A DNA stretch of 64,000 nt. It comes from Mobula birostris (Eukaryota). The stretch is from assembly GCF_030028105.1 (NCBI RefSeq), contig NC_092384.1, forward strand, positions 3,949,665-4,013,664, in the 5' to 3' direction. This document shows, in pieces, positions 3,299 to 55,300 of this stretch. Made by a program: the position numbers and the translations under genes. Below the pieces are notes generated by a model. The model was not told the origin of the DNA and searched no databases. It worked only from the letters and a program-made list of their open reading frames with translations. The stretch's first letter is position 1. Each line of letters opens with the position of its first letter.

Positions 3299-6200
3299 AC
3301 ACGAACCTTTTTGCATGAACTGATTGCGCTATTGCAACAGTTATCTCGATGCAGGTACTTCCCCAACGAAGTCTCAATAAGGTGGATTATTTATTAAACT
3401 GCCAAACGATGCCGACTTCTCTCGATCCTCCACTTCGATGAATTCATCACTCTCCCTTCAAAACAGTCGGAATTGAGTAAATTGGTACTCCCAGCCACAA
3501 ATTCCCAGTCCAAATGCAGTATCTTGTAAGAGAATGCACCTTCCGTTTTAAAAATGAAACTGCGTCACAAAAACAAACACGCAACAGAAACGGAGGCACA
3601 ACACGTTCCACCTGGAAATCTGCAAACTCAAAACCCTACTGCGTCACCTGAGTCGACCCTTATATAGTCACGGGGGGCACATGTCATCACGTGACCTCAC
3701 ATCGGCGGGAAAATCACATCGGGTGACCTCCAAAAGACCATTACATCATTTTCACAAAAAAAAACAGATATCCTTGAGCATGTAACACCTCCCTCCAAAA
3801 ATAAATTGGTCTCTTGAAGAACAAAAATTTAACAATATATACAGAAAAAATACAAAGATATAAAATTTACAAAATACACAATATATACAATCTTATCTTT
3901 CAGCTCTTTACAAACTAATGTACAATAGGAGTGTTACAAATGATAAAATATCTCTCAAAAAAAAAATTTTCATTGTACATTTAACGTGTAGACAAACAGT
4001 CAGCGATCACACCATCTTTACCCTTGATATGAGTGATCAAAATATTGTACTTCTGTAACATTAGACTCCAATTTAATGATCTTATATTTTTGTTTTTCAT
4101 CTTACTTAAAAACACTAATGGATTGTGATCGGTATAAACTGTGAGCGGTTTATGCGTAGAACCAACAAACACTTCAAAATGTTGCAAAGCTAAAACAAGA
4201 AATAACAATTCTTTTTCTATTGTTGAATAATTTTTTTGATGGGCATTAAATTTCTTAGAAAAATAAGCTACCGGACGATCAACTTCATCACCATCATCTT
4301 TTTGAAGCAACACTGCTCCTGCAGCTTTATCACTAGCATCTACAGCTAACGAAAATGGTTTTTCAAAGTCAGGAGATTTAAGTACAGGTTGACTACATAT
4401 TATAGCTTTCAATTTGTCAAATGCCACCTGACAAGACTCTGTCCAAACAAACTTCTCATTCTTCTTCAAGAAGTTAGTTAATGGAAGAGCAATATTTGCA
4501 AAATCCTTACAAAATTTTCTGTAATATCCTACCATACCGAAGAATATTCTGAGGGATTTTTTTCTACCAGTGGGAGTGGGTACTTCCAAAATTGCCTGAA
4601 CTTTTGCTTGAACAGATGCTAATATCCCCTGATCCACAATATAACCAAGGTAAATCACTGTGGCATGACCAAATTCACTTTTGGATAAGTTAATAAGTTA
4701 AGTTAGCTTTTGAAAGTCTCTCAAATAATTTCTCCACCGCCGCAATACGTGCTTTCCACGTATTATTCCCTGCAACCAGATCATCAATATAGGCATCTGT
4801 ATCTTTTAATCACTGAATCACGCCATTAATCATCCTCTGAAAACTACTTGGTGCATTCTTCATCCCAAATGGAAGAACATTATATTCATATAACCCAGAT
4901 GGGGTTGCAAATGCTGAAAGCTCTCTACCTCTATCCGTCAATGGAACACACCAATAACCTTTTAACAAATCAATTTTTGTAAGGAATTTGGCCTGTCCAA
5001 CTTTATCCACACAATCATCTACTCTAGGGATTGGATATGCATTGGCCTTTGTCACAGCATTCACCTTCCTATAATCCGTACAAAACCTAATACTATTGCC
5101 TGGCTTAGGCACCATATCACACAAAGAACTCCAATTCGAATTAGAATATCTAATAATATCATTTTCCAACATGTACTTAATTTCTTGTTCAGCAAGTTCA
5201 CATATTTCCCTGTTCATTCGATATGGATGTTGTTTTATGGGTTTTGCATCTCTCACATCTGTATCATGTGTAGCTACATTGGTTCTTCTAGGGACGCCTG
5301 GAAATAAATCTCTGTATTTAAAAATTAACTGTTTCATCTACTCTCTCCATTCCAGCTGTAAATGAGCTAATTTTTCATCAATGTTTTCCAGAATTTTTGA
5401 ATTTGGCAACCTGGCTGAAATAATGCTGGGTTTAAAATGAGTTTCAGATGAATCCTCTAGTAAGTTGTCATCAAGATCAGACTCATTATTAATTACAACA
5501 GTCATATTAGCAACTTCTCTTTCTTAATACAACTCACCAAATACAGGAATTGGTTGCAGTGGTGCCACTGGAGTAACCTGATTAGGTTTACCAACAATTT
5601 GACATATGTGACTTGTTCTACAAAACATTGCCACATCTTGTCTTAAGCTAGGCCAATAAAAATGTTTAGAAACTTTGTTCATAGTTTTCTTTACCCCTAA
5701 ATGACCACCCAAAGGAATACTATAAGTCATAGTCAAAATCTCATTTTGGTAAATTTTAGGAACACCAACTTGATGATTAACTTCCCATTCCTCACTAGCA
5801 AGAATTGTAGGCGATTTCCACTTTTTCATTAATACCCCCTTTTCAAAATAATATCCATCTGTTACTTTTCTAATTTCACTATCTGGAAGAGCTTGTTCTT
5901 TTGATTTAACTATCTCAGGATCCCTACCCTGCTCTGCTATCATCTCCTTCCAAGATAGAGACAAATCTTCCTGATCAGACTTACCACCAAAATCCTGATC
6001 AAATAAGGTAGGTAGGAAAGTTTCTGATTCATCCTCAAAATTCAAATCTTGATTTGAACTGTCATGGGTAACAACCACATCCTTTACATCAGTCTTTTTA
6101 GCCATAGTTTGTGTTACAACACAGGAAGAATCTGTGTTAGGATCCCTCTGTGGTTCCTCAGAATTTGAATTTATTGTCAAATACACTTCAGGAAAAACTT

Positions 6201-6962
6201 GTCCACCTGCTGAATCATTCCCTAATAAAAGAGAAACATCAGTCACAGGTAAACTGGATTGTAGTCCTACTTTAACAACCCCTGTAACTAATCCTGACCT
6301 TAAATTTACTCTATGTAAATGTACTGGCATAAGGGCACTCCCTACTCCTCTTATATAATTTACCTCACCAATGTCAGACTCAACACTAAACCTTAACACA
6401 CTATCTAATATTAGTGATTGGGGGGGAGAGGGGGGGAGAGGGGGGGGAGAGGGGGGGCAGAGAGAGAGAGCACTTTTTGCATGAAATCATTGCGCTATTG
6501 CAACAGTTATCTCGATGCAGGTACTTCCCCAACGAAGACTCAATAAGGTCGATTCTTTATTAAACTGCCAAACGACGCCTACTTCTCTCGATGCTTCACT
6601 TCGTTGAATTCTTCACTCTCCCTTCAAAACTGACGGAATTGAGTAAATTGGCACCTCCAGCCACAAATTCCCAGTCCAAATGCAATATCTTGTAAGAGAA
6701 CGCACCTTCCGTTTTAAAAATGAAACTGCGTCGCAAAAACAAACACGCAACAGAAACCGAGGCACCACACGTTATACCTAGAAATCTACAAACTCAAAAA
6801 CCTACTGCGTCCTCTGAGTCGACCCTTATATAGTCACGGGGGGGGGGGGCGGCACATGTCGTCATGTGACCTCACTTCGGCGGGAAAATCACATCAGGTG
6901 ACCTCCAAAAGACCATTACATCAATTTTCACAAAAAAAACAGATCTCCTTGAGCATGTAACA
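2918..6962 (-). mobile_element. Gmr1-like Ty3/Gypsy LTR retrotransposon (INT before RT-RH), internally deleted
   Basis: TG...CA termini, 4-bp TSD AAGG (2914-2917 / 6963-6966); LTR 2918-3787 and truncated LTR about 6471-6962; PPT 3788-3796 (GGAGGGAGG on minus). Integrase zinc-binding region GHLGVKKT...CRTSHICQ (5524-6399) precedes RT (4810-5337, YIDD just after) and RNase H (3981-4658). Confidence 0.9.
3255..3296. repeat. (GA)n microsatellite within the LTR
   Basis: Direct reading. Confidence 0.95.
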
Positions 6963-8138: not shown

Positions 8139-9269
8139 TGTCATGTACCCCCTGACGGCGATAAAGAAACCAGCAGAAATAGAAAACACTTTGGAGTCCA
8201 GTATTGCTATTAACTAATAATATTTATTAGTAACTACGCAATACAGTAACATAAATGTAGATAACATGTTAGCAATGATTTCATATATATATAATTAAGT
8301 CAGTAAATGTGGAAATATATATATATAGTATATGAAAAAACAAACTTCTTTAAGTCTAGGGGTAAAATATACAGTCTTACGATGATGAGTAAAGTTCAGT
8401 TCAGTTCGTGGTATTGAGTTGAGTAGTTATGGACAGAGAGAGAGAGAGAGATGTGAGTCTTCAGTTGAGCTGACGCCATCGATCTTCTGGTTATCCTCTG
8501 AAATCATTTAAATCCCACCGACTGTGACCACAACAAAGGGGACCGGTTTTCTGTGGTGGAGCTATCAACCCAGGCAAAGGTTGGGCACATGGACAACTCC
8601 CCACTGGTCACTGCCTTTTCTTTTCACTGCAATAGCCACTGATCCATCTGCCTGATCATTCCTTCAGAAACCCACTTTTTCTGCGGGCACAACAAAGCTC
8701 ATTCAGTGTCCAAAACATGTGTCTGGGCTCTATATTATCTGACCTATTTATCTCACCATACTGGGTACTAACTGTCAGTCAAATAACTCCTCCTTCCTGT
8801 GTCTGTGTAAGAAATGTACCAGCAGGCAAATGTCCTTTGAAGTATCAACACGCTGCCGAAAAACCATAACGTCGATTGTTCATCAAATAACGCCGCCCTC
8901 GATCACCATAGCAACTTAGGAGCTGCTTGGCTCCAGCTCAGTGCCCTAACATGACAGTCCAAAAGTTATTNNNNNNNNNNNNNNNNNNNNNNNNNNNNNN
9001 NNNNNNNNNNNNNNNNNNNNNNNNNNNNNNNNNNNNNNNNNNNNNNNNNNNNNNNNNNNNNNNNNNNNNNNNNNNNNNNNNNNNNNNNNNNNNNNNNNNN
9101 NNNNNNNNNNNNNNNNNNNNNNNNNNNNNNNNNNNNNNNNNNNNNNNNNNNNNNNNNNNNNNNNNNNNNNNNNNNNNNNNNNNNNNNNNNNNNNNNNNNN
9201 NNNNNNNNNNNNNNNNNNNNNNGGGGTAATCGAGCACAGTTCATAGGGGTAATTCAGAACCCCGTCACA
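8139..9269. mobile_element. LTR insertion (solo LTR or collapsed element) spanning the assembly gap
   Basis: Starts TGTCAT, ends GTCACA, flanked by 4-bp TSD GTAC (8135-8138 / 9270-9273); interrupts CR1 RT. Confidence 0.75.
8971..9222. other. Assembly gap (252 N)
   Basis: Run of N. Confidence 1.
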
Positions 9270-29455: not shown

Positions 29456-32400
29456 TGTCAGGGCGCTGGAGCAGTGATCCAATCGCAAACCCAGTACTGT
29501 GCACCCGGTGATATTATTTGAGTAACAAAACCCGAAGTGCTAATGAAATCGGCGTCAAAGTTCAGGCAGAAATTAAAACAGCCAGAGAAATCCAAAAACC
29601 AGAATCAAGCAACAGACAGTGTCGATATTCAGACAGACAGAGTAGAGATACGCATGCTGGAAAGACTCAGAAAAATTCACAGGCACAATCTGGCAACATG
29701 CAAGTACAAATACACTGAGCAATAAACAGAGAGGTACATGATAGGTGGAGCACTATGTGGCAGAAGTGTCAGCAAAACAGGTAATAATGAGAAACAGGTG
29801 AGAGGTGGAGTACTCAGTAATACAGGGCCCAGGGTAGAGAAAGAGCGGGGACAGGAGCACTTGGGGAATGATAACCAACCAGAGCACATGGCAATACAAA
29901 ACCACAGACTATCGGCAAGGTGAAAAACACGCAAAAAGACAAAGTTCAACTGGAGGTACTGACAATAACCACCCCCCTCACCCCCTCCACAGGCAGCTTC
30001 TGGCATCACGGCAGGTAGAGCTGGTTGCTGGCGATGTCAGTCCCTGTTGAGAGAGGGGTCTAGGATGTTACGGGCGGGGATCTAGCACCTCTCCTCAAGA
30101 CCGTAGCCCTCCTAGTCCACAAGGTGCTAGAGGCCACGGCCCCGGCGACGAACATCCAGCAGTCGATGCATCGTGAAGGCCTCTGACCCATCGATGATCC
30201 GTGGGGGAGGGGAGAGTTTAGAGACAGGACACAGGGGTGGCTCATGAAAGTCTTGATGCGGGACACATAGAAGGTGGGATGAATGTGGCGGAGAGTGGAG
30301 GGGAGCTTGAGGCTGGCAGCAGAGATTGGAGGGGAGCTTGAGACGGGCGGCGGGGAGTGGAGGGGAGCTTCAGACGGGCGGTGGAGAGTGGAGGGAAGCT
30401 TGAGACGGGCGGCGGGGAGTGGAGGGGAGCTTCAGACGGGCGGCGGAGAGTGGAGGGGAGCTTGAGACGGGTGACAGCAGGGCTGATGACTTTCGCAATG
30501 GGAAAGTGGCCAATGAAGCAGGGGGTCAAGCTTGCAGGAATCTACCTTTAGGGGCAGGTCTCAGTTTGAAAGCCGCACACGCAATCCCTGGCGATAACGT
30601 GGGGCCTTGGAGCGATGGTGGTCAGCTTAAAGCTTGATCCTAGCAGAGGCACAGAGAAGGGCAGACCGAGTGTGCCTCCACGTCCGCTGACAACCGAGGA
30701 TGAATGCCTCTGCAGATGGAACGCCAGCCTCCTCCTCCTGGGCAGGAAACAGTGGAGGTTGGTAGCCAAGACCCCACTGGAAGTGGGACAGACGGGTATC
30801 GGATGAGAATATATGGCTGCTGTCACCACGCAGGGGGGTTCTGGGAGACCAGACACCGCAATACGGTCTCTAGCTGTTGGTTGGCCCGCTCGGTCTGCCC
30901 ATTGGTCTGTGGGTGGAATCCTGAAGACAGACTCAGAGGCGCCCAGAAGATTACAGAATGCCCTTCAGAAGTTGGCTGTGAATTGAGACCCCCCCCGTCT
31001 GACACAACATCTACAGGTAAACCATGCAATTTAAAAACATGCAGTACTAGTAATTTGGTTGTTTCTTTGGCTGAGGGGAGTTTAGATAAAGGAATGATGT
31101 GTACAGACTTGGAGAAACGATCAACTACTGTGAGAATGGTGGTGTTACCATCTGATGGGGGAAGACTGGTGACAAAATCCAAGACAATGTGGGACGAGGG
31201 TCTCTCGGGGACGACAGGGGTTGTAACGGACCAGGAGGTGACCAGTTAGAGTTCTTGCCTTGAGCACAGACCGAGCAGGCTGAGACGAAGTTGCGGATGT
31301 CATCTCCCATGGAGGGCCACCAGAACCGCCGACTGATGAAGACCTGAGTACGCTTGGTTCCAGGGTGACAGGATAACCGGGAAGAATGACCCCACTGCAA
31401 TACCTGTGAGCGGGCAGAGCTGGGAACATAATCACGGTTAGTGGGGCATTGACAAGGGGCTGCCTCGCTCTGTGAGCAGCTCGCACAATGGATTCAATGT
31501 CCCATTGTGCTGCACCCACGATACAGTGAGCAGGGAGGATGACATCGGGGACCTCAGGGGTCTCAGAGGAAGGAAATCTTCTGGAACGGGCATCAGGTTT
31601 TCCATTCTTGGAACCAGGGTGGAAGGACAGAGTAAAATTGAGTCTTGAGAAAAATAGGGACCAATGAACTTGACGGGAGTTGAGACGCTTGGCGGTACGA
31701 ATATATTCCAGATTCTTGGGATCAGTCCGGACCAAGAATGACACTTTGGGTCCGTCCAGCCAATGCCTGCACTCCTCCAGAGCTAGCTTCACAGCCAGCA
31801 GCTCCCGGTTTCTGACATCGTAATTCCGCTCCGTGGGAGTGAGGCAGTGAGAGAAGGCGGCGCAGGGATGTACCTTCTGATCCTTGGCCGAGCGCCGAGA
31901 GAGAACAGATCCTACGGCAATGTCAGACACATCCACCTCCACAATGAACTGCCCGTCGGTGTCAGGTTGAATTAGGGTGGTGACAGAGGTGACGCTTTCC
32001 TTCAGGTCAGGGAATGCTTTTTTCAGCAGCAGGAGACCTGCAGGAGTATCTGACAGCCGATGAGGCAAGAGCAGTGAGTGGTGCAGCCAGTGTACTGTAA
32101 TTTCTGATGAAGCGGCGATAGAAGTTAGAAAAGCCCAAGAAGCGTTGCGACTCCCAATGCGTCAAGGGTTGGGACCATTCGACCACCGTCTTGACCTTCT
32201 GTTGGTCCATCTGAATGGAACCGCCTGAAATTACATACCCCAGGAGGAAAACGGTATTGTGATGAAACTCACATTTCTCAGCCTTCACAAAGAGCTGGTT
32301 CTCCAGAAGGTGCTGGAGAACATTGCGGACGTGCCCTGTGTGTTCAGCAAGTGACTTAGAGAAAATCAAAGTATCATCGAGATACAAAAAAGCAAATTGC

Positions 32401-37920: not shown

Positions 37921-38984
37921 ATTTATTACAGTTCTTCTTAAACATAATGTCGTTTTATTTGCGAAAATCTACAAAACCATAAATGCAGTAGTAATAATTG
38001 ATTAAAACGTTTTCATATTTGATTAGTTCGTTCCTGCATGAACTGCCATGCTCTACAAACCTGGGGATATATTGTTTTCTGTTCAGCATGTCTGACTTAG
38101 GTAGACGTCTTAGCCCAAGCCAATTTCAGAGTGACGTATGTAGGCTTTTGATCTCCTCCGGATAGCGTAAACTGAAAATTATTAGAATTCTGTTATTATA
38201 TTTCCATCAATAAAATGCATATCTTTTAAAACTAAATATCCGACAATATCTCAAAAAAAAATCATCATAGCAACACACAAAACGCCGATAACAATGAGAA
38301 GCCCGTTTTAATTCCGAACTTGCTTTTCCTTTCGTGAAACAACCAAAAAGCAAAACTGCTTTATCTGCTTCTACGGGTATCTCGTAATAATTGAAGATGG
38401 GTGATCGAGAATAACAAAGAAAATTTATTGATCACTTGGGTTATTTAAACATTTTACCCGATGCTTTATGAAGATGGTAGCTGTGCGCCTCAATATTTTT
38501 CTTAATTAGTTCCGAGACAAGTAAAACAGGAGTGATACACAGGGCAGTCATTTTTTTGTTTCACTTTCAGGCTGCATGCCAATTGTCCGTCAATTGTAAC
38601 CAGGAGAATTTCTTTCCATTTTTTTTTTCTGCGTTTATGTTTCAACTGTATACCACACTCCTATCTCTATCACCCCTGAAACATCTATGTCTCTTGTTCC
38701 TCCTTCTCCCAGCACTCAGGTCCTGAAGTATTTCACGCCTCTTTTTCAATCCCTGTTTCATCTTATGAGAATTACCTTCCCTAATTGAATAAATTTTATT
38801 TTCTTGCATTTTCCTGGCTTATTCGAAGATTGCTATAGGCTGTTTTTACAATATTATACTTTTCGGTTTTAAATCGAATTGCCGAGTAGAGTAATACCCT
38901 ATCAAACAAATTCAGCGTATTATGTCTACTGTACTCCTTTCAAGCTTGTGTATTTACACAGGCACCATGAGCGCACTACCTGTC

Positions 38985-39780
38985 AGAATCAGAATCAGGT
39001 TTCATATCGCCTGCATATGTCATGACATTTATTAACTTAGCCGCAGCAATAGAATGCATAGTAATAGACAGAAAGAAGGTATACTGCATAAAGAGTATAT
39101 ATCTTAAATATTTAAATTAAACAAGCGGTGTAAAAAAAGTAGAATTAAAAAAAGTAGTGATGTAGTGTTCATGGGTTCAATGTCCATTCAGAAATCGGGT
39201 GGCGGAAGAGAAGAACCTGTTGCTAAATCTTTTAGTGTGTGTCTTCAGGCGTCTGTACTCCCTTCCTGACAGTAACAATAAGAAGAGGGCATCTCCTGGG
39301 TGAGAAGGGACTTTAATAATGTATGCTCCTTTTTAATGTACCGAAACTTTAAGATGACCTGTGTACTACGGAGTCTAGTGCCCATGATGGAGCTGCCTAA
39401 TTTTACAACTCACTACAGGTTACTTCGATTCTGTGAAGTGCCCCCTCCCCCCCCCATACGAGGTGGTAATGCAGCCAGTTAGACTGCTGTCCACGGTATA
39501 TCTGTAAAAAATTACCAGTGTCCAGAATCAGTTCATTTATGTTACTGACAATGAGTGCAATTTTGTTGCTGCGACACCACATCTGGCATCTCTCGCTCCT
39601 GTGCGCCTTTTCGTCTTTTCGTCTCCATCTGATATTCAGTTACAATGGTTGTATCATCAGCAATTTATATATGTCATTTCAACTGTGCCTAGCCACACAG
39701 TCATGGATGTAGAATAGAATAGATCAGTGGGCTAAGTACACATCCCTGAGGTGCGTCTGTCACTCAGTCCCGTCAACCAT
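38985..39780 (-). mobile_element. Degenerate Rex1/L2-like LINE 3' end
   Basis: (CTGATT)n-type tail at 38985-39000 on the minus strand; decayed RT-end sequence. Confidence 0.55.
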
Positions 39781-39949: not shown

Positions 39950-42620
39950 TTCTCTAGTGCACTTTTAAAAATTCATAATATAACTCGTATTTCGTATCGT
40001 AACAAAGTGAAAATGTCCCATCGCTGCTGATATTCCCCTTGTCATAGTTGATGAAACGACGAGGATCGCACACTCTCTCACATGGGCATTAAAATTCCCC
40101 TTCAAGTTATTCCCTGTTGCATTGATACCCTTGTTATATGGGAAATGTGCTTATCATATGTGTTTTATATGCCTCTCCTACTTTTATATAGATCTATTAG
40201 GCTTTTCCTTAGCCTCAAGCTCCAGAGTAAACAAACCCCACCAATTCAATCTCTCCACACAACTATGGTATTCCAATCTAGGCAATACTTTGGTGAATTT
40301 TCGATGCACCATTTTCAATACAATCCATACATTTCTATAGTGTGTCGACGAGAAACATACAAAAAACTGCAAACAATGTTCTAAACTTTGTCTAACTAGC
40401 GTTCTCCAAAACTGCATACTCTTATATAGGTGATCTATGAAAGCAAGCATTTTATATGCCTTCACCATCCAATCATTTATCAGGCAATTATGGAAAGGCA
40501 CCCTTCGAATCACTCTTTTCATTAACATGCAGGACTGTCCTAACATTTGCACTATGGGCACTACTGTTACTTAGCTTCCTAAAATACATCACTCACACAG
40601 AATGATTAAATTACAACCACAAATAGGCCCGGCTGTAGTCGAATTTCCAGTGCTAATCTCCAATCCATTTCTTCACTTAACATATGAAATACCATCACTT
40701 GTCGGCTATCCCTGCCCATTAAGCTTGCACCGCTATGTTAGACGTTGAAGGCTACATTTCAGAGAGCGGGAAAAATCTGGCAGATGATGCACAACTTTGG
40801 TCAAGGTCGTTAGCTTTTAAAGAAACAAAGTGAAGATCAGACATTAATTATATGTGGATATTTTACAGCACGCTGTTTAGCAAGGCGACTTCGGAGTGTT
40901 TGTGCATGAATCGCAAAATGCGACTGGAATGGATTAAGAGGTTCTGTTGTGCGAGATTCCCTGCTGAAGGAATAGTATATTTATCAAGTTGGAGAGTGAA
41001 AGAATTAATTTTGAGAATAATTACCAGAGTCTGGAGCCATAAAAGTACGAGTACAGTGGCTCTGATAGATTGGATGACACTTCAAAAAGCGAAAGAGAAT
41101 GTCAAGAAAGCATCAGTTATCCTTTGCTGTCCAGAGCAAATGGAACAATATAACTTGTTTGGCTCAATTATAGATCTTCATTATTAAATTGATAAGTTAG
41201 TAACTTTATCTATTATTGTCACATGTACGGAACTACTGTGGAAATAAAACTTAATTTGCCAACCATACATATCAGTAAAAGTTAAAAACCGAAGCAATTG
41301 CAGAATAAACTGTCGCACAGTGCGGGCAAACAATAGGATGCCATAACGAGCTAGACTGTCTGGTCCAGAGTCCACCTAAAGGACCTTCAAATTGTCTTTT
41401 AAGAGCGGGAGACAAACTCTCCAGGAATCTGCTGTTACATGCTTCCAGACTTTGGTATCGTGACGGGCGGAGTTGCAGCAGAAGAGAAAATTATCCCTGT
41501 TCATTTGGCTATTGTACAAGACATCGGGAAGCGTAGACAGAGTCCATGGAGATGAGGTTGGTTTCCCCGATATGATGAGGTCTGTACACAGCTTCTGAAG
41601 TATAGATAGCATTAGGACAAAGAAGAAGTAATACAAAAACGTGGGAAGGCCTGGAAAGTTTGACAATTGGGGGCAGTTTAGAATTCAGCAGAATTATTAT
41701 AAAGGTGGTGAAGGCGTAAGTGGAAAATAACAACACAAAAGTTGAGGGCCTAATGGTCTACACCCCAGAATACGTAAGAAATTGGCCCCAAAATAATTGG
41801 TGGTTACTTTCCAGAATTTTATGGAGTCGCTAGAATGCAGAACAGTTTCGCAGGACTGCAAGACCCAACATATAAGCCCGATATGTAAACTATAAAATGC
41901 AATGAAAGCAGGGAATTGTAGATAAGTGGGTGGAAAAAATGTTGCAAAGGTAGCCTTGGAGAACTTGATGGGGAGAGCTAAAAGCATGATCTATTAAAGC
42001 AAAGTTATGTTTAAAATTTATAGTAAGTCATCTTTTGACAGTATAGCTGGCAAATATCATTCAGAGAATTAATTATTTCGTGTAATTACAATTCCGAAAC
42101 ATTTCAATAACATCCCACAACAGAGCTTGGTGCAAAATTAAAACTTGTGGTATTAGAGATTTATTAAAATGTTAACCATGATCGAGAATGAGTTGGCCAA
42201 AAAGGAACAGAGCTTTTTGCCCCAAATGGAAAAAGGTGCCTAGTGAGGAACCACAGTGAACATGCTGGGATTGCAGTTATTCAGCGTATATGACGATCAA
42301 TTCAATAAGAGGATTAAATGGAATCCATCCAATATTTGAGGACAGCATAATGTTGTGTGAGAAAGTAAGCCTTGAGAACGAAACCAAGAAACTCCATACT
42401 GAGAGAGTGTAGAGATATCTAGCAGATGACGGAAAAATCCAAATAGATTAACTTTGGGGCTAAAGACAAGGGAAGTAATTTTGTGAATACTAAGTCAATA
42501 GGAAAGGCAGAGCTGAATGTTGGCAACACACACAAAAGATTGCTTGGCCTGTTGAGTTCCTCCAGCACTTTGTGTGTGTTGCTTGGATTTCCAGCATCTT
42601 GTTGATGAATGTCAGCACGC
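39950..42620. mobile_element. Mosaic of very old CR1, Rex-like and Penelope-tail fragments
   Basis: MVKAYKMLAFI...WRTLVRQSLEHCLQF (40184-40561, minus) and PTSSPWTLST (41376-41666, minus), among others. Confidence 0.5.
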
Positions 42621-43499: not shown

Positions 43500-43609
43500 C
43501 TAGAGTTTAACTCTACCTGTCACAATGAAGGTGAGAATCAGGAAGAACATTACTCCTCTTGCTAGGTAACCGAAATTCTGATCAGCAAATGAATTGTAGT
43601 TGCCTGAAT
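43500..43609 (-). CDS. IgSF VJ-C1 receptor, candidate terminal TM exon (DSGNYNSFADQNFGYLARGVMFFLILTFIVTGRVKL*)
   Basis: Acceptor aacgttacag| in phase 1, matching the C1 donor; hydrophobic run with an intramembrane Arg and a short tail; stop 43500-43502; ATTAAA at 43453-43458. Gives a 255-aa L-V-C1-TM protein. An internal G|GTAGAG donor at 43517 is also possible. Confidence 0.65.
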
Positions 43610-43881
43610 CTGTAACGTTAATCATAAATTTAGTGATGAGCTTTAAATTGCATACGGCATTTAAATTGCAACTCAGTCAAATATTTCATCATTTCACAGT
43701 ATTTTGCATAATATTAGATTATGACTGTTCGGGCGAGATAAACATACAAAGCTGTTTTCCCATGGTTCAGTGTGTTAGGATGCTGTCTAGTGAATATCTG
43801 TAGAAGGCTGTGAGTATTGTATCGCATAGACCTGCTTTGTTCAGAAAGTCGAAACGTAGCCGAGATTCCCTGTTTTGTGTA

Positions 43882-44686
43882 GGATGTTGGTGGCAAAAAT
43901 AGGAAAACAGATTATTATCTGAATGGTGGCCGATTAGGAAAAGGGGAGGTGCAACGTGACCTGGGAGTCATTATACACCAGTCATTGAAAGTAGGCATGC
44001 AGGTACAGCAGGCGGTGAAAAAGGCGAATGGTATGCTGGCATTTATAGCGAGAGGATTTGAGTACAGGAGCAGGGAGGTACTACTGCAGTTGTACAAGGC
44101 CTTGGTGAGACCGCACCTGGAGTATTGTGTGCAGTTTTGGTCCCCTAATCTGAGGAAAGACGTCCTTGCCATAGAGGGAGTACAGAGAAGGTTCACCAGA
44201 TTGATTCCTGGGATGGCAGGACTTTCATATGAAGAAAGAATGGATGAACTGGGCTTGTACTCGTTGGAATTTAGAAGATTGAGGGGGGATCTGATTGAAA
44301 CGTATAAGATCCTAAAGGGATTGGACAGGCTAGATGCAGGAAGATTGTTCCCGATGTTGGGGAAGTCCAGAACGAGGGGTCACAGTTTGAGGATAAAGGG
44401 GAAGCCTTTTAGGACCGAGATTAGGAAAACCTTCTTCACACAGAGAGTGGTGAATCTGTAGAATTCTCTGCCACAGGAAACAGTTGAGGCCAGTTCATTG
44501 GCTATAGTTAAGAGGAAGTTAGATATGGCCCTTGTGGCTACGGGGGTCAGGGGGTATGGAGGGAAGGCTGGGGCGGTGTTCTGAGTTGGATGATTAGCCA
44601 TGATCATAATAAATGGCGGTGCAGGCTCGAAGGGCCGAATGGCCTACTCCTGCACCTATTTTCTATGTTTCTATGTTTCTATGTAC
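43882..44686 (+). mobile_element. Young CR1 3' end, antisense within the Ig gene
   Basis: Uninterrupted 170-aa C-terminal ORF2 (43949-44461); (TTTCTATG)3 tail. Confidence 0.92.
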
Positions 44687-45332
44687 TCTGAGACTATGAG
44701 ACGTTGTGTGACTTGTGCACGCCCAGGAGTTTAAAACTATTCGTAGTTTTCCCTTCTGTACCGCGGGTGTAAAGAGGGTGCGAGTTTTCCTGAAGCGGGT
44801 AATCATCGTCCTTGTCAAGTTTACATTGAGGACAAAGTTATCTGCCTGGCGCCTGGCCTCGAGCTCTTCCAAATCCACTGGGCACTTTGAAATTTATCTG
44901 AAAATAACGCTAGGATACCCTAAGGTCGATTAATTCGCCGTGACCGAGCAGTGAAAAAGGATGTCCGTTCCGACTGAGTTTCACGTTGTCCAAAGCCGCC
45001 ATTCCTTCGTTTTATCTTATATTTTTCATTCAGGACCTCGCTGCTGTTTTTAAATATTTGTAATCCAGCACTCCGCTGATCTAATGACTTGTTAGTTGTT
45101 TTTATCTTCTCTCTAAAGCACTATACGTTGTGGGAGATCAGTGCGTCCTTAAAATCATCACAGAATATAATTGATAAGATTCGTCTACGTAGAGAAAATG
45201 AATTAGGATTGGGGTTGTTGTACATTGTAATAGCTTCACAGTCATTCTCGCAGACTGTAGAATCATTCGCAGAATTACGTTACTAATTCAAATCAATCAA
45301 TCCAAATTTGTCAGAAGCAATGTTAACTTACA

Positions 45333-45478
45333 TTAACTATGTGATATTTTGGAACAGCATGCGTATCCAGAGGCGACATTAGATAGGCCTCGGGGTTGTG
45401 ACAGTTGATTAAGTAGTGCATTACTTTGGTGCGTATACTGCTGGTGGCTGCTCCCTGATACCACGGATTTTTGTTCTA
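45333..45478 (-). CDS. Candidate cytoplasmic exon after the Lys-TM exon
   Basis: Acceptor tactttctacag|; 47 open codons in phase 1 (VEQKSVVSGSSHQQYTHQSNALLNQ...SHS*). In phase 0 it starts with an immediate TAG. Confidence 0.25.
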
Positions 45479-45951
45479 CTGTAGAAAGTATGGCCACTAG
45501 AACAGGCAGATAAATAACGGTGACGGTGTCTTAGCTATCTCAGTTACACAAGGAACCCCATCTTCTGCGTTTCATTCTTATTTCAGGATTCTGTTTTTCT
45601 TTGTTTCAGGGAACGTTTGCATCCCAATAAGAGACAGTGTCATCGAACCTAAATCACAACGTCTTAGCGGTCTTGAAGGTATACCCCCTGTGTGTTTTAA
45701 GGGGTGGTGCATTGTCTCGAACCTGTCGTCACAATTTCAAAATCAAAGGGCAGATGTTGCCATGTTGTTAACAATTCTCGGGCGCTAACCTGTTAGATGA
45801 TCTGCCCACGGCCCAATACTTAGATGCATTCACAAAGATGGCACACACGCGCCTTTAATTTGCCTTCACACCGAAGATTCAAAGTCAAAGTCAGTCGAGG
45901 TTATTGCCCTATGCAAATATACCTGTATTCACAAATACAGAGAAAACTTAC

Positions 45952-46049
45952 CTCCATTGTCATCAGAGGGACATGCGATCTTGAATGCGGCGTTCGCAAT
46001 AAAATAAGAATTTTTAGAACAGAGAACAGAAGGTGAGACCAAAGGAGTT
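45952..46049 (-). CDS. Candidate alternative TM exon (ELLWSHLLFSVLKILILL...)
   Basis: Acceptor ttttgcaccaaacag| phase 1, in frame with C1; perfect G|GTAAGT donor; hydrophobic segment with Lys. As assembled it is 98 bp and exits in phase 0, possibly 1 nt short. Confidence 0.45.
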
Positions 46050-46169
46050 CTGTTTGGTGCAAAATCATCAAGGGGTCAGCGTTTGCCTGATCTGTACTAA
46101 TCGGGGTTTTGAAAGCTAGTTCATCAAAAAGAAGTACTTATTCTTAAACTCGGTACTGCTGCTACTCAG

Positions 46170-46800
46170 CCTCCTGTAGCTCCCAAACAGGAGATAATCT
46201 GCAGCAACACACACAGAATGCCGGAGGACCTCAACAGGTCAGGCAGTATCTGCGGAAAGGAATAAACAGTCGATGTTTCAGGCCGAGACCCTTCTTTAGT
46301 ACAGAAAAGGAAGGTAGTTGGGGAGGGCAGAATAAAAAAAAATAGGGGAGGGGAAGGAGGATAGGCAGCTGGCATAAAAAGATACGGATCTGGAGAAAAA
46401 GGAATTTGATAGTAGAGGACAGTGGATCACAGGAGGAAGGGAAGGGGTGGGGGCACCCAGAAGAAGGTGCTAGGCAGGTGAGAAGGCGTATGAGCTAGAC
46501 TGCAGAATGTAAAAAGAGCGGAGAGAAGGAGAAAGTTGGCGGAATGAGAAATCGATATTCATGCAATTAGGCTGCAGGCTGCCCAAACAGAATATAAACC
46601 GTTGCTACTCCACCCTGAATATCGCTTCATCCAGACACAAGAGGCAATGGATCGACATGTAGGAATAGGAGTGGGAATTGAACTTAAGTATTTGGCCACC
46701 GGGTAGTTCCACTTTTGGCGGATGGAACAGAGGTGCTCGACAAAGCAGTTTCCCGCTTAATACTAGTATCGCCATGTAGATTAATGGGGAGAGACGAATG
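46170..46800 (-). mobile_element. Degenerate Penelope-like 3' fragment in the C1-TM intron
   Basis: Similar to the GIY-YIG end and tail of 58576-60270; decayed hammerhead at 46266-46301. Confidence 0.7.
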
Positions 46801-47404
46801 GGCAAGCAAATAATGGAGAGAGCGTTCACTATACTTCACCTTTTATTAGGATTGTGCTTCTTTTTCTATAACCTTGCAATTTATATTTAATATGATTTTG
46901 ATGATTGCTGTGCATCTGATGCTGCTGCAGGTAGTATTTTCATAGCACTATAACGTCTACTTTGGCTTTGATATTTAACTTAGACATTGCTCAGTTTCAC
47001 CGATATTGATAGAATCATGCAACGTTATATTAGTGCAGAAAATTTGACAGGAAGGTGACGTATAAGATGCAGTCATATGGAAAGACAGGACAGGATTCAA
47101 TGAAACATTGAGGTCCCATTCCTTATGTCCTCAGTATCTGACTTATGTGGACTTATATATCCATATTTTTTTTCATAAATGATGGATGCCACCTATAAAA
47201 CTTATTAAACAAGATTTACCTATCAGTTATTATTATTCTTGGTGATGGAGTTTCCATTCTTTTAAATTTCTAAGCTTAATACATTTTGGAGCTTGCCGTT
47301 TTCATTTTCGCAACAAAGGTACAAGTAGATTGCAGATCATCAACTCATACAGTATTCGTACATAAAGTATGGACAGCCAAACGAGTGCAAAATGTTTAAC
47401 GTAG

Positions 47405-47410
47405 TTTATT
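47405..47410 (-). promoter_or_regulatory. Candidate intronic polyadenylation signal AATAAA after C1 read-through stop
   Basis: tttatt on + strand at 47405-47410, 30 nt past the in-frame TAG (47441-47443) reached when the C1 donor is skipped. Confidence 0.35.
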
Positions 47411-47457
47411 GTGAACCGCTCAGATGCTAAATACACGGAGCTAATAACTGATCTTAC

Positions 47458-47760
47458 CTGGATTGTAGAAAATGTAGCTGATGTTGGCAGGGTTTGGAAG
47501 AGCGACGTGAGAAACCTGGCAGGTATAAACTGTCCCGTCCTCCACAGGCTCAGTCTCAGTCAGGCAGCTTGAAGCCTCGTACAATCCCGCAGTTGTCTTT
47601 GTTTTGATAGGCTGGACTTCAGGTATAATATCTGAGCAATTCTTGTACCAAGTTATGTTCAGACCTTGCGGGAAAAACGCAGCGGTGTTACAAATAAGAG
47701 CCAGGGTGACTGATTGGTTCTTAGGCAGCATAACCATCAGACGCAGCGGGGTTGGAGGAT
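47458..47760 (-). CDS. IgSF VJ-C1 receptor, exon 3 (C1-set domain)
   Basis: Acceptor ttttatttctag|, donor G|GTAAGA, 303 bp, phase 1/1, open. C1 hallmarks LALICNTAAFFPQGLNITWYKN and YTCQVSH; sequons NQS, NIT, NCS, NIS. Confidence 0.92.
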
Positions 47761-49536
47761 CTAGAAATAAAATGTTTTTTTTTTAGCAACACAAAGCTTT
47801 TAACAAATTTGAAGTAAATTACATTGCAGCATCAAAAAATAACTTCATGGAATGACAATTGTCCTTCAGTTTTCTTCTGCCGAGAAGTTAGAACTTTTTA
47901 TTTAAATGTTTAACTTGTTTTCTCTGTGATATTCATTCCCTCCAAACCCAACTGCCTTTCTTTTAAATTTGATTGTTGAATGCTTTGTTTTCATGGGTCA
48001 CGCCAACTTGTACATCGCTTGCTATTTCTAGATCTTGCGGAACTAAAAGAGAGGTAGCTACAGACAAAATGAATGGAACGCTGAGCTTCATGTACAAAAG
48101 TTCAGATTCAAAGCATTAAATTGAAAGTTACATTGCCCCGTTTTTGATTATAATTCGGTGACCCAACTGAAGGAAGTTTACTTCTTTATAATAGTTCAGC
48201 AGGTCAATTTGAAAATTGCACTCTCACTGATTGTTAATTAGAGTACCTAACCAGGGGACAAGGTTTATTGATAAATAAATCCAGATGAAGAACACGGTTC
48301 AGTAAGAAGAATTGTTTATCAAAGAGAAAAGAGAGAGAAAAAAAATGTTTCTGCAATTCGAAAACCTTTTACCGAACCAAAAATACTGACACAGAAATTA
48401 TTCAGACTACGTGAAAGGTACAAATCCCTTTCAAGTTGTATTCCCATCATGGATTTGTCATTGTCAAGCTCCATTTACAATAGTTCACACAGAATGTGAG
48501 CTTGAGATGCAAAGACTCAAGTAACTTTGCGCCCACAATCATCACTCTATATGTGTGATCGTACCGTCGTTTCTCATTCTGAAAATAAGAAGGATCCATG
48601 TAATAAATTTCATAGATCATCATTGCATTATCAATCATTCAGTCTTTCAAGTCCAAGCATTTTCCAGGAAAAAAAAAACAAGAGTGTGATCAAATCATAC
48701 ACTTCAGGAAAATATGTGGCAGCAATGAAGCTGGTCCAGGAGAAATGCACACATACAATGAAAGAAGCGCTGTACTTGTGAGATGATATCAGAAGTCTGG
48801 ATGGAAAAAGAATCTTGGCCTTATAGATTTATGTGAGGCTGAGATAGGCCGGATGGCCAGAATTCTCGTTTTCTATCCTGTGGCAGGTGAGTCCAGAAAG
48901 AAAAGGCACTTTGTAACGGCGGAAATTTAGAAACGTTATGCGTTCGTTTTTGCCCCACATAGAGGCTGGTGCCACAACCTGTAAATTGTACCGAAACTTG
49001 ATGGGAAGGCTCAAGCAAGTATAAACCGAAATCAGGCAAATCAAATTCAGCTGGACCGTTTCTTTCTACGACACGTCTACGATTCCGTCATTCTATGCAC
49101 TTAAAAAAAATAATAAATAGTCTCACTGAGCGCGAGCATATTCGACACCACAAATAGAACCTCTTTCAACAACGTCGACAGGTTGTCTATAGTGTGCACA
49201 TTGGATATTACAACAGCCTCCCATTAGCATTTCATCAATAGGATTAAAACTGCCCCAGACTGCAGTCATTTTACTATCCAGGGTAGGAAAGCCATGCCGC
49301 ATTTACTGATCAAGCACTGTCACTTCTGACCCAGATGGCTGCTTGAGAATTTAGGAAGTTACCCATTAGCTACATAGTATGCTTCTAACAATCATGGATC
49401 ACTAAATCAGCTCGGCAGTAATGTTGGTTTTCCTAGTAACGCCCAAATCCATTAGATAGAGAAAGCACAAAACATTTTACACAAGGGGAGCGAGCGAATG
49501 GGACAGACAGACCTCGCCTGGTCCTCTGGCACTCAC

Positions 49537-49845
49537 CGTAAACCATCAGCTTTGTACCCGTCCCATTTGAAACTGTGGCGTGTATCAACCGGCAGAAATA
49601 AACCCCGGCGTCTTCTGCTGTCACAGCATTAATCTGTAAGATGGCACTTCCCTGGCTTAGGAAATATGAATAGATTCTTCTGTCGAGTCTCTCGTCCAGG
49701 TAACTGTCTTCCCCGTCTCTCCACCAATGCACTCTCACGTATTTATGGGGCAAAATTGGAAAGATGCAGTAAAGTTTTGCCGTGTCACCTCTCGTCACCG
49801 TAACCTCGGGATCTTGCCTCAAGGTGAACGCAGAATTACCTTTGG
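49537..49845 (-). CDS. IgSF VJ-C1 receptor, exon 2 (V-set domain with joined J-like segment)
   Basis: Acceptor tttcccaacag|, donor G|GTGAGT, 309 bp, phase 1/1, open. B-strand Cys (KLYC), C-strand Trp (VHWW), DAGVYFC, J-like NGTGTKLMV. Confidence 0.93.
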
Positions 49846-50043
49846 CTGTTGGGAAAGCATTAAACACAAAATCAAATATCTAGTCCGGAAAATACACAGA
49901 GGATTACGCAAATCATATGAAATTGGCGTTCAACGAAATACAAAAAAAATACAGCTACATTGATAGAAAATAACAAATGAAATGCAATATTAAATATTAC
50001 TCAGTTGAATATAAAATAAGATTGTAGCGAGCGAGAAGTATAC

Positions 50044-50089
50044 CGGTGCCGCTGACATTCAGGATGATCAAAGGCAGCAAGAGTCTCAT
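50044..50089 (-). CDS. IgSF VJ-C1 receptor, exon 1 (leader/signal peptide, MRLLLPLIILNVSGT)
   Basis: ATG at 50089; 46 coding nt (15 codons + 1) of hydrophobic peptide; G|GTATAC donor, phase 1. Typical Ig-family leader exon size. A 198-bp intron leads in frame into the V exon. Confidence 0.8.
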
Positions 50090-50589
50090 TATCTCACAGC
50101 ACAAAACTGAAAGAAACAGTTGAATGAACGAAGTGACAAATGAACAGCGAGAGGGGTGCTACGAGAAAGGTTTGGTTCCAGTGGGCGTGTCAGGCGTCAA
50201 ATCTGCGCACATATTAATTACATCTCTGCACAGCGAAACATATCAGGGGTTGTTACTGGTCACTTGCGAATCTGTGAAGGATGTGCAAAAATATGAATGT
50301 GTTTTTTTTCCTGTAGCTACATTCTCTAATGAGCAGTGTTCTCGTTATGAACATCCTGTCCGAAAGGGCTAATTAAACTGGACGGGATTTTCTTCTCGGA
50401 GGTGTTACTTGCTCAATTTTTTTTTCTCTTTTTTGGTTCATTTAAGAGACTCCTGGATGAATACATGGAGCTTAATAAATAAAGAGTCATGGGTAAGACT
50501 AGGTAGTTCTAAGGTAAGGACATGTTCGGCACAGCTTTGAGCGCCGAAGGGCCTGTATTGTGCTGTGGGTTTTCTATGTTTCAACGTTT

Positions 50590-52399: not shown

Positions 52400-55300
52400 T
52401 GCACCTGAACTTGACGGCGAACAATATCCTTGCAGGTAGGTTTGCTAGCATGGTACGGAAGGGTTTAAACTAATTAAACTAAGGGGGATGGGACTCGGAG
52501 CGATAGAGCAGTGGAAGAAGTGCATGGAGTAAAGCCAGATTTAGAGAGGCTTTGAGGAAACAGAAGCAGAATAAAGGGTGTAGAGGTAGTAAGATAGAAG
52601 GGCTAAAGTGTGCTTACTTCCATGCAAAAAGCATCAGGAACAAAGGTGATGAACTGAGAGCTTGGATACATACATGGAATTATGATGTAGTGGCCATTAC
52701 AGAGACTTGGCTGGCAACAAGGCAGGAATGGATTCTCAATATTCCTGGATTTCAGTACTTTAAAAGGGATAGAGAGGGGGAAAGGGGGGGGGGTGGCATT
52801 ACTGGTCAGGGATACTATTAGAAACGGTGGGTAATTTAGCAGGATCCTCTTTTGAGTCAGTGTGAGTGGAAGTCAGGAACAGGAAGGGAGCAGTTCCTCT
52901 ATTAGGGGTATTCTATAGGCCCCCTGGTAGCAGCAGAGATACCGAGGAGCAGATTGGGAGGCGGATTTTGAAAGGTGAAAAACTAACAGGGTTGTTATCA
53001 TGGGTGACTTTAACTTCCTTAATATTGATTGGCACCTGATTAGTTCCAACGGTTTAGACGGTGCAGAGATTGTTAAGTGTGTCCAGGACGGATTCCTGTC
53101 ACAGTACGTGGACAGGCCGACTAGGGGTAATGCCATACTAGATCTAGTACTAGGTAATGAACCGGGTCAGGTCACAGATCTCTCAGTGGGTGAGCATCTG
53201 GGGGACAGTGACCACCGCTCCCTGGCCTTTAGCATTATCATGGAAAAGGATAGAATCAGAGAGGACAGGAAAATTTTTAATTGGGGAACGGCAAATTATG
53301 AGACTATAAGGCCTGAACTTACCGGTGTGAATTGGAATGATGTTTTTGCAAGGAAATGTACTATCGACATGTGGTCCATGTTTAGAGATCTCCTGCAGGA
53401 TGTTAGGGATAAATTTGTCCCGGTGAGGAAGATAAAGAATGGTAGAGTGGAGGAACCATGGGTGAAAAGTGAGGTGGAAAATCAAGTCAGGTGGAAGAAG
53501 GCAGCATACATGAGGTTTAGGAAGCAAGGATCAGATGGGTCTATTGAGGAATATAGGGAAGCAAGAAAGGAGCTTAAGAAGGCGCTGAGAAGAGCAAGAA
53601 GGGGGCATGAGAAGGCCTTGGCGAGTAGGACAAAGGAAAACCCCAAGGCATTCTTCAATTATGTGAAGAACAAAAGGATGACAGGAGTGAAGGTAGGACC
53701 GATTAGAGATAAGGGGGGGAAGATATGCCTGGAGGCTGTGGAAGTGAGCGAGGTCCTCAATGAATACTTCTCTTCGGTATTCACCAATGAGAGGGAACAA
53801 TATGGTGAGGACAATATGAGTGAGGTTGATGTTCTGGAGCATGTTGATATTAAGAGAGAGGAGGTGTTGGAGTTGTTAAAATACATTAGGACAGATAAGT
53901 CCCCGGGACCTGACGGAATATTCCCCAGGCTGCTCCATGAGGCGAGGGAAGAGATTGCTGAGCCTCTGGCTAGGATCTTTATATCCTCGTTGTCCACAGG
54001 AACGGTACCGGAGGATTGGAGGGAGGCGAATGTTATCCCCTTGTTCAAAAAAGGTAGTAAGGATTGTCCGGGTAATTTATAGACCAGTGAGCCTTACGTC
54101 TGCGGTGGGAAAGCTGTTGGAAAAGATTCTTAGAGATAGGATCTATGGGCATTTAGAGAATCATGGTCTGATCAGGGACAGTCAGCATGGCTTTGTGAAG
54201 AGAAGATCGTGTCTAACAAGCATGATAGAGTTCTTTGAGGAGGTGACCAGGAATATATATGAGGGTAGTGCATTGGATATGATCTATATGGATTTTAGTA
54301 AGGCATTTTACAAGGTTCCACACGGTAGGCGTATTCAGAAAGTCAGAAGGCATTGGATCCAGGGAAGTTTAGCCAGGGGCATTCAGAATTGGCTTGCCTG
54401 CAGAAGGCAGAGAGTCATGGTGGAGGGAGTATATTCATATTGGAGGATTGTGACTACTGGTGTCCCACAAGCATCTGTTCTGGGTCCTCTATTTTTCGTG
54501 ATTTTTATTAACGACCGGATGTGGGGGGTAGATGGGTGGGTTGGCAAGTTTGCAGACGACACAAAGGTTGGTGGTGTTGTAGACAGTGTAGAGGAGTGTG
54601 GAATATTGCATAGAGATATTGATAGGATGCAGAAGTGGGCTGAGAAGTGGCAGATGGAGTTCAACCCTGAGAAATGTGAGGTGGTACACTTTGGAAGGAC
54701 AAACTGCAAGGCAGAGTACAAAGTAAATTGCAGGATACTTGGTAGTGTGGAGGAGCAGAGGGACCTGGGGGTACATGTTCACAGATCCCTGAAAGTTGCC
54801 TCACAGGTAGATAGGTTAGTTAAGAAAGCTTATGGGGTGTTAGCTTTCATAAGTCAAGGGATTGAGTTTAAGAGTGGCGATGTAATGATGCAGCTCTACA
54901 AAACTCTGGTTAGGCCACACTTGGAGTACTGTGTCCAATTCTTTCGCCTCACTATAGGAAGGATGGGGAAGCATTGTAAAAGGTACAGAGGAGAATTACC
55001 AGGACGCTGCCTGCTTAAAAGAGTATGGATTATGTTCAGAGATTGAAGGAGCTAGGGCTTTACTCTTTGGAGAGAAGGAGGATGACAGGAGACATGATAG
55101 AAGTGTACAAGATAGTAAGAGGAGAGATAGAGTGGATAGCCATCGCCTCTTCCCCAGGGCACCACTGCTCAATTCAAGAGGACATGGCTTTAAGCTAAGA
55201 GGTGGGAAGTTCAAGAGGGATATTAGAGGAAGGTTCTTTTTCACGAGAGTGGTTGGTGCGTGGAATGCACTGCCTGAGTCAGTGGTGGAGGCAGATAAAC

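Follow-up and report, generated by a model that had tools for sequence, protein, structure and literature searches.

A candidate activating-type member of a chondrichthyan paired-receptor family with VJ-C1 architecture in Mobula birostris

Described VJ and VJ-C1 receptors and the M. birostris gene

Cartilaginous fishes are the oldest lineage with immunoglobulins (Ig), T cell receptors (TCR), and the major histocompatibility complex, and chondrichthyan genes that combine an unsplit variable-joining (VJ) exon with a C1-set constant domain bear on the question of what the RAG transposon invaded. We analyzed a 64,000-nucleotide stretch of the Mobula birostris genome (NCBI RefSeq assembly GCF_030028105.1, contig NC_092384.1, forward-strand positions 3,949,665 to 4,013,664; hereafter, the window, whose own numbering is used throughout), which carries such a receptor gene on its minus strand. 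The gene is intact and consists of five exons, i.e., a split leader, a single-exon VJ, one C1, a stalk and transmembrane (TM) exon, and an exon encoding a short tail and the 3′ untranslated region (UTR). We consider it fairly probable that this copy represents an activating-type member, derived from a gene bearing immunoreceptor tyrosine-based inhibitory motifs (ITIMs), of a chondrichthyan family of paired receptors; the features of this type are an arginine in the TM segment, a short basic tail, and a fossil ITIM exon that is out of frame and contains a stop codon.

The signature of paired inhibitory and activating receptors (e.g., SIRP, KIR, Ly49, and PILR) consists of an identical ligand-binding exon, a diverged, charged membrane anchor, and an ITIM fossil, and activating members have arisen from inhibitory ones by this same route among mammalian KIR, Ly49, and SIRP. 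Receptors coupled to FcR-gamma or CD3-zeta, such as NKp30, GPVI, and Fc-alpha-RI, carry their arginine where the TM segment begins on the outer side; SIRP-beta has a mid-membrane lysine and uses DAP12. Human NKp30 combines a TM arginine with the lack of a C1 domain, and PRARP has a non-rearranging VJ, C1, and TM architecture. Unsplit elasmobranch VJ-C1 genes are an active topic, with NKp30, PRARP, and eight nurse-shark NCR3 genes being cited in this context (PMC12227049, PMC10751288). Two conserved single elasmobranch genes of this kind are UrIg, whose liver-secreted product contains three C domains, and UrIg2, which has 9–11 C domains (PMC12227049).

UrIg and UrIg2 share with the gene described here their occurrence in elasmobranchs, the split leader, the unsplit VJ exon, and the C1-type domains, and UrIg2 C domains were among the best PDB matches to the C1 profile of the family (105.7 bits over three domains). 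However, both have three or more C domains and are single genes, whereas the family described here has one C1, a TM segment, ITIM and charged-TM variants, and multiple copies. NKp30 (NCR3) presents a single-exon VJ and a GNGT-containing J motif (GHGNGTFLIV in Xenopus, as compared to SNGTGTKLMV here), and the V-only isoform of a sawfish family member is named “NCR3-like” in RefSeq. The Xenopus NCR3 sequences retrieved, however, are without a C1, while here the C1 exon is present and spliced in, and the Xenopus NCR3 V domain (48.5 bits against the family V profile) scored no better than antibody light-chain V domains and a TCR single-chain variable fragment (scFv) from PDB (46–49 bits). By language-model features, SIRP is the nearest named family; it is likewise non-rearranging, has a V domain with a J-like strand followed by a C1-set domain, and includes paired ITIM and charged-TM members with near-identical ectodomains. 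SIRPs differ in having three Ig domains (V-C1-C1) as compared to the one C1 here, in sequence (25–26% identity), in the score of the SIRP-beta V domain against the family V profile (24–26 bits vs. 48 for Xenopus NKp30), and in the mid-membrane lysine of SIRP-beta, which contrasts with the arginine at the outer TM end here. The likeness to PRARP, compared by described architecture, consists of the shared non-rearranging VJ, C1, and TM plan. In contrast to rearranging Ig and TCR genes, V and J are contiguous in one exon, no recombination signal sequence (RSS) was seen, and RNA is colinear with the germline. Judged by the defining features of these groups, the receptor falls outside SIRP, NKp30, UrIg, and the rearranging receptors.

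Gene structure, transcripts, and the ITIM-bearing sister gene

The exons and motifs of the gene are as follows.

50044–50089, minus strand: coding part of the leader exon (46 bp), encoding MRLLLPLIILNVSG plus 1 nt; donor GT at 50043–50042
49537–49845, minus strand: VJ exon (V-set; 309 bp); acceptor ...cccaacag, donor GTGAGT
47458–47760, minus strand: C1-set exon (303 bp) with PPTPL linker and YTCQVSH motif; acceptor ...atttctag, donor GTAAGA
43517–43609, minus strand: stalk and TM exon, encoding DSGNYNSFADQNFGYLARGVMFFLILTFIVT; acceptor acag/AT, donor CAG/GTAGAG at 43517/43516
37935–38171, minus strand: last exon; acceptor ttttcag/T at 38172/38171, 3′ end approximate
38112–38110, minus strand: stop codon TAA of the predicted short tail, (V)YAIRRRSKAYIRHSEIGLG, within the last exon
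38061–38162, minus strand: fossil exon with the ITIM and second tyrosine motif in the old frame, reading SGGDQKPTYVTLKLAWAKTST, a stop codon, and VRHAEQKTIYPQ (tblastn)
37959–37954 and 37925–37920, minus strand: AATAAA polyadenylation signals in the 3′ UTR, from sequence

The leader, VJ, and C1 exons join in phase 1 at every junction and yield a single open frame of 219 aa, as the initial annotation of this stretch had proposed; exon assembly, Pfam, and RNA all agree with that proposal, and all splice sites of the gene are canonical. Pfam matches exceeded the gathering score for both the VJ exon (V-set, 1.6e-9) and the C1 exon (C1-set, 6.5e-10; the CD80-like C2-set_2 reached 0.034). The J-like G strand YFCRLIHATVSNGTGTKLMVY, with the J motif SNGTGTKLMVY, is already encoded within the VJ exon, which therefore needs no rearrangement; an RSS-like heptamer-spacer-nonamer was observed 0 times, as compared to 0.39 in shuffles, in the VJ exon and 150–240 bp on each side of it. 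The earlier claims of an internal J strand and a missing RSS thus held up, in the RSS scan as well as in the colinearity of RNA with the germline. Upstream of the leader, the 5′ UTR probably extends to about 50227, the position as far as which a paralogue RNA contig could be aligned. The single C1 exon directly precedes the TM exon; tblastn and local alignment found no convincing second C1 or other Ig exon in the window.

Contigs from public RNA runs were aligned to 44300–50299 and, in a second pass, to the 3′ region. Joints at 50044/49845 and 49537/47760, with GT..AG on the gene strand, span both 5′ junctions; the initial annotation had named a lack of spliced transcripts as grounds for abandoning its proposal. 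Across the V/J region, the contigs are colinear with the germline, and junctional diversity is therefore absent. Splicing to an alternative, in-frame acceptor at 47664 (joint 49537/47664) drops the first 32 aa of C1, including its first cysteine; this acceptor is used in orthologue RNA and corresponds to the joint in isoform X2 that RefSeq lists for the sister gene described below (P0001), in which MVY is joined to GLNITW. The contig of one organism (organism B; runs X3 and X4) differs from the window at 1 of 309 nt in the V exon, 15 of 295 in C1, and 11 of 184 in the 5′ UTR and leader; these differences reproduce M. birostris XP_072135200 (e.g., GTC>AAT, Val>Asn), and the contig is a paralogue transcript. 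The contigs of a second organism (organism A; X1, 1001 nt, and X2, 652 nt) diverge from the window by 1.5–3% over the V, C1, and TM exons, with about 5% over the last exon, and represent the orthologue in a close relative.

The organism A contigs run from C1 through the TM exon into the last exon. They cover 43612–43511 (102 nt) with two mismatches and an unchanged arginine codon, the TM-exon alignment extending 6 nt further than the window's own donor, to 43511, in frame; the contig then continues across a joint at 43511/38170 to 37952, just beyond an AATAAA. Because the orthologue contigs jump from the TM exon to 38170, the gene has a fifth exon starting at 38171, and the 255-aa model of the initial annotation, which reads past the donor after the TM exon to GRVKL and a stop codon, misses this exon and has to be replaced. 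Splicing with the window's own sites gives 270 aa (272 aa if the TM exon is 6 nt longer, as in the orthologue), and the sequence accordingly predicts a type I membrane protein some 270 aa in length. Its predicted C-terminus is ...FIVT-VYAIRRRSKAYIRHSEIGLG, i.e., a basic tail of about 20 aa with no ITIM or immunoreceptor tyrosine-based switch motif (ITSM); this prediction presupposes that the TM exon is joined to 38171, a splice observed in orthologue RNA only. The TM arginine codon (AGA, 43559–43557) lies five residues into the hydrophobic span, in the segment GYLARGVMFFLILTFIVT, and the translated stalk lacks a cysteine that could form an interchain bond. Another earlier note had put forward a second TM exon, with a lysine, at 45333–46049; it was rejected, as RNA depth was zero over 44900–46099 in all four runs.

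The closest relative of this copy is XP_072135200 of M. birostris (P0151; its isoform X2 is P0001), named “natural cytotoxicity triggering receptor 3 ligand 1-like” in RefSeq, which belongs to an orthology group with members in Hypanus, Leucoraja, Heptranchias, Heterodontus, and Callorhinchus. The two are sisters on the ectodomain tree (Shimodaira–Hasegawa-like approximate likelihood ratio test, 99; 95% identity over 227 columns) and share the exon plan, the alternative C1 acceptor, and homologous stalk/TM and ITIM exons. Identity is 15/16 aa in the leader, where the one difference falls on the codon split by the splice, 101/102 aa (99%) in V, 91/100 (91%) in C1, and 18/33 (55%) in the stalk and TM. 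While XP_072135200 has an uncharged TM segment (YLGTGIILF...) and a 74-aa tail with LTYVTL and TIYAQT, the window copy has the TM arginine, the predicted tail of some 20 aa, and an ITIM frame that is disabled. The V exon DNA (99.7% identical) is significantly closer between the two genes than both flanks (Fisher p = 2.7e-5), suggesting, at the level of sequence, that the V exon was homogenized by gene conversion. At 47636–47638, the window copy has a cysteine where the sister gene has a glycine (KNCSD vs. KNGSD), with the N-x-S sequon retained; this is an extra, unpaired cysteine in the C1 domain.

The ITIM relic in the last exon matches SEDDQKLTYVTLNMARAKTSTIVRDSEQNTIYAQ of the sister gene at 23 of 34 aa (68% identity, tblastn). 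At the −2 position, leucine is replaced by proline, so that the motif reads PTYVTL, a non-canonical ITIM, and a TAA at 38099–38097 interrupts the old frame 12 codons past PTYVTL, ahead of the second tyrosine motif. In the predicted mRNA, the fossil exon is out of frame, as the frame entered from the TM exon is a different one, and a canonical ITIM is absent from the window copy in any frame used. Between the TM segment and the ITIM exon, the sister protein is about 14 residues longer, which points to a small cytoplasmic exon of about 41 nt in that gene; such an exon is missing from the orthologue RNA and undetectable in the window, where tblastn and local alignment did not convincingly find either the small cytoplasmic exon or the last exon of the sister gene.

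The window copy thus presents a basic TM residue, a predicted short tail without ITIM or ITSM, and an ectodomain near-identical to that of its ITIM-bearing paralogue P0151. Under the reading we favor, it would be a recent derivative of the ITIM-bearing XP_072135200 that kept a near-identical ligand-binding V domain, perhaps by gene conversion, and gained an arginine in its TM segment, while skipping or loss of the small cytoplasmic exon would have put the old ITIM exon out of frame and left a short basic tail. The receptor would then bind the same ligand as its inhibitory twin and might activate through an adaptor of the FcR-gamma/CD3-zeta type, carrying an immunoreceptor tyrosine-based activation motif (ITAM) and recruited by the TM arginine, with the twin recruiting SH2 phosphatases. 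We infer this adaptor coupling, along with the activating function, the shared ligand, and the gene conversion; the putative adaptor type follows from the placement of the arginine at the outer TM end, which resembles that of FcR-gamma- and CD3-zeta-coupled receptors. If correct, the copy documents the route from an inhibitory to an activating receptor, with a near-identical V exon, a gained TM arginine, and a fossilized ITIM exon.

Several observations weigh against this reading. The organism B runs (X3, X4, and X7) yielded only the sister-gene transcript and none of this exact copy, and the transcripts that support the 3′ exons belong to an orthologue with 1.5–5% divergence from it. In the orthologue contigs from two runs, about 125 surplus nt are found between 38144 and 38140 of the last exon; this surplus equals 2 mod 3 and, if free of stop codons, would place the sequence downstream of it in the old ITIM frame. 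The first 27 nt of the last exon, a duplicate of which was sought as the source of the surplus, occur only once in the window. Orthologue RNA also has GAA at the old-frame TAA of the window (plus-strand 38099 A>C), so that the nonsense change is confined to this species or copy. The orthologue tail may thus differ and could re-enter the ITIM frame; the orthologue might even still bear an ITIM, in which case tail loss in the window copy would be very recent, or simple decay. In C1, most substitutions relative to the sister gene alter amino acids (9 aa from about 15 nt), and they include the unpaired cysteine, a pattern as compatible with relaxed constraint as with adaptation.

A multicopy chondrichthyan VJ-C1 family

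An exhaustive HMMER search with the V exon returned M. birostris proteins first, followed by many shark, ray, and chimaera proteins of 245–500 aa, and word-indexed searches with the protein and the family alignment added about 50 further chondrichthyan members; in Heterodontus and Heptranchias, about 10 distinct family proteins each were found on one chromosome. An alignment of 11–35 members retains the motifs (S/G)NGTGxxLxV, PPTPL (the linker), and YTCxVSH, and the window model scored 352 bits against the family hidden Markov model. RefSeq labels for these proteins include SIRP-alpha-like, NCR3 ligand 1-like (B7H6), tapasin-related-like, Ig lambda-like, CD276 homolog, and TCR beta-like; the naming of family members is inconsistent and misleading. 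No protein model for this copy was matched in the searches run, in line with the earlier suggestion that the gene is poorly annotated in this lineage. No bird or teleost protein was among the significant matches of the family searches, and the closest non-chondrichthyan matches were mammalian SIRP-beta-like proteins with 25–26% identity. One-to-one orthology with a characterized SIRP or B7-H6, which the initial annotation had feared would remove the novelty, was not seen, SIRP-beta being about 26% identical and scoring 24–26 bits in its V domain.

The family C1 profile matched Ig heavy-chain C domains, UrIg2 C domains, and SIRP in PDB, and the C1 exon itself had B7H6 chains among its PDB matches (1.9e-7); these PDB sequence searches are dominated by multi-domain antibodies, and they confirm the V- and C1-type but cannot rank NKp30, SIRP, and B7H6. 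A profile of the V domain only retrieved five family members and no named relatives from a set of 5.8 billion proteins. The AlphaFold model of the sister ectodomain (predicted local distance difference test score, pLDDT, 89.4) gave two-domain Foldseek matches that were all antibody light chains (among 50 listed), so the receptor is, as modeled, light-chain-shaped and VJ-type.

Most tails in the family survey are 70–150 aa long and carry canonical ITIMs (LTYVTL, LTYAAL, and VSYATL), while 12 of the 58 surveyed members have a tail of at most 25 aa together with an arginine or lysine at the start of the TM segment. These short-tailed members are scattered on a tree built from ectodomains only (12 changes for 12 rows), repeatedly beside ITIM copies from their own or a related species; because short-tailed, arginine-bearing copies recur over the tree in this way, we regard the group as a paired-receptor family. 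Several short-tailed members share an R-F-x-L...IIVDH-type anchor, and five proteins from chimaera and sharks (P0155, P0082, P0173, P0185, and P0141) have an arginine at the start and IIV(D/E)H at the end of the TM segment. This shared R...IIV(D/E)H anchor suggests an old activating TM exon type, distinct from the recent one of the window copy. Relatives in the family also make V-only and C1-truncated isoforms, the V-only form being seen for paralogues only.

The initial annotation had described a unique, single-chain TCR-like innate receptor. Of this, the non-rearranging single-exon VJ joined to C1, the split leader, and the predicted light-chain shape stand, while the assignment to TCR-like precursor-type genes does not, and uniqueness has to be given up, as the gene is one of dozens of paralogues per genome across chondrichthyans and its sister is an ITIM receptor. 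The locus adds no new candidate antigen-receptor precursor. Novelty is reduced because the family is already predicted in RefSeq, in the form of uncharacterized computational models. We found no description of this chondrichthyan VJ-C1 family in the searchable literature. Sharks, rays, and chimaeras hold a large and practically unstudied family of light-chain-shaped receptors in inhibitory and activating-type pairs, and the occurrence in them of the route known from mammalian KIR, Ly49, and SIRP suggests that paired-receptor dynamics date back as far as jawed vertebrates do. A broader idea, which we regard as rather doubtful, is that the family, with its NKp30-type GNGT J motif and occasional V-only isoforms, represents the full-length ancestral form of NKp30/NCR3, from which tetrapods lost the C1, i.e., a multicopy descendant of a VJ-C1 precursor that was already paired into on and off receptors, with the window copy capturing the birth of an activating member.

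Alternative readings and surroundings of the gene

A young pseudogene, i.e., a decaying and silent duplicate of the inhibitory gene in which the ITIM tail was lost by mutation and the arginine and cysteine arose by drift, is an explanation that we consider unlikely. It would account for the TM and last exons having no RNA depth in X3 and X7, for the finding of only paralogue C1 in X3 and X4, and for the stop codon and the L>P change in the old ITIM frame; the mostly non-synonymous C1 changes, including a G>C that makes the unpaired cysteine, and introns full of retroelements fit it as well. However, all five exons are open with canonical splice sites, the V exon is 99.7% identical to that of a functional sister gene, and spliced transcripts of the sister-species orthologue contain this TM exon with its arginine. 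Moreover, a short tail with an arginine recurs in many members from chimaera to rays. That the gene is still inhibitory, with an overlooked small cytoplasmic exon (about 41 nt in the sister gene) putting the ITIM exon in frame, seems quite improbable to us. The sister protein does have its additional residues (about 14) between the TM segment and the ITIM exon, and the 125 extra nt of the orthologue contig would restore the ITIM frame downstream, where the stop codon is absent; yet no such exon is detectable in the window, orthologue RNA splices the TM exon straight to 38170, and, even in frame, the window would encode the non-canonical PTYVTL with a stop 12 codons later.

We give very little credence to two further readings. 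According to one, it encodes a TCR-like chain from an antigen-receptor precursor that associates with a second chain and uses its TM arginine to couple to CD3. The VJ and C1 architecture, the split leader, the light-chain-like fold, and the arginine are all compatible with such a chain, and, among single-domain PDB matches, the V profile scored best with light-chain V and TCR scFv (46–49 bits), but the Xenopus NKp30 V domain scores equally to those of Ig and TCR, the stalk is without a cysteine for an interchain bond, relatives produce V-only and C1-truncated isoforms, and the gene is a recent duplicate of an ITIM receptor within a large paired-receptor family. The other, that the product is a B7-family ligand (B7H6/NCR3LG1-like) and not a receptor, draws on the RefSeq name of XP_072135200 and on the B7H6 chains among the C1-exon PDB matches (1.9e-7). 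Against a ligand stand the C1-set match (6.5e-10), which is far better than that to C2-set_2 (0.034), the J-type G strand, a V profile that matches best with Xenopus NKp30, light-chain V, and TCR scFv, and the pairing of ITIM and charged-TM members, which is a receptor design.

Nine of the ten open reading frames (ORFs) of at least 180 aa in the window were scanned with Pfam; six carry retroelement or long interspersed nuclear element (LINE)-type domains (i.e., Ty3/gypsy-type RNase H and integrase zinc-binding domains, LINE endonuclease and reverse transcriptase, and a GDSL-lipase-like domain) and three had no match. None of the nine looks like a host gene, consistent with the initial statement that the receptor is the only host gene in the 64 kb. 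The ORF with the GDSL-lipase-like domain scored 29.5 bits, just under Pfam's 32.9-bit threshold, and may represent a LINE ORF1 esterase. The repeats located by domain matches or lying within the gene are given below.

3984–6399, minus strand: retroelement remains (domain matches)
31148–32068, minus strand: retroelement remains (domain matches)
53000–55043, plus strand: retroelement remains (domain matches)
1393–2094, plus strand: retroelement remains (domain matches)
43949–44461, plus strand: intron 3 repeat fragment, an ORF of 170 aa without a Pfam match, outside the gene product

The 170-aa ORF in intron 3 is one that we take to resemble the C-terminal part of LINE reverse transcriptases. 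Intronic repeats at 42400–42599, 44300–44699, 46100–46299, and 39000–39199 presented very high summed RNA word depths, from hundreds of thousands down to thousands, in all runs and in both species; these fragments probably represent abundant sequence derived from short interspersed nuclear elements or LINEs that is present in many transcripts. A run of 252 N at 8971–9222 marks an assembly gap or a masked stretch.

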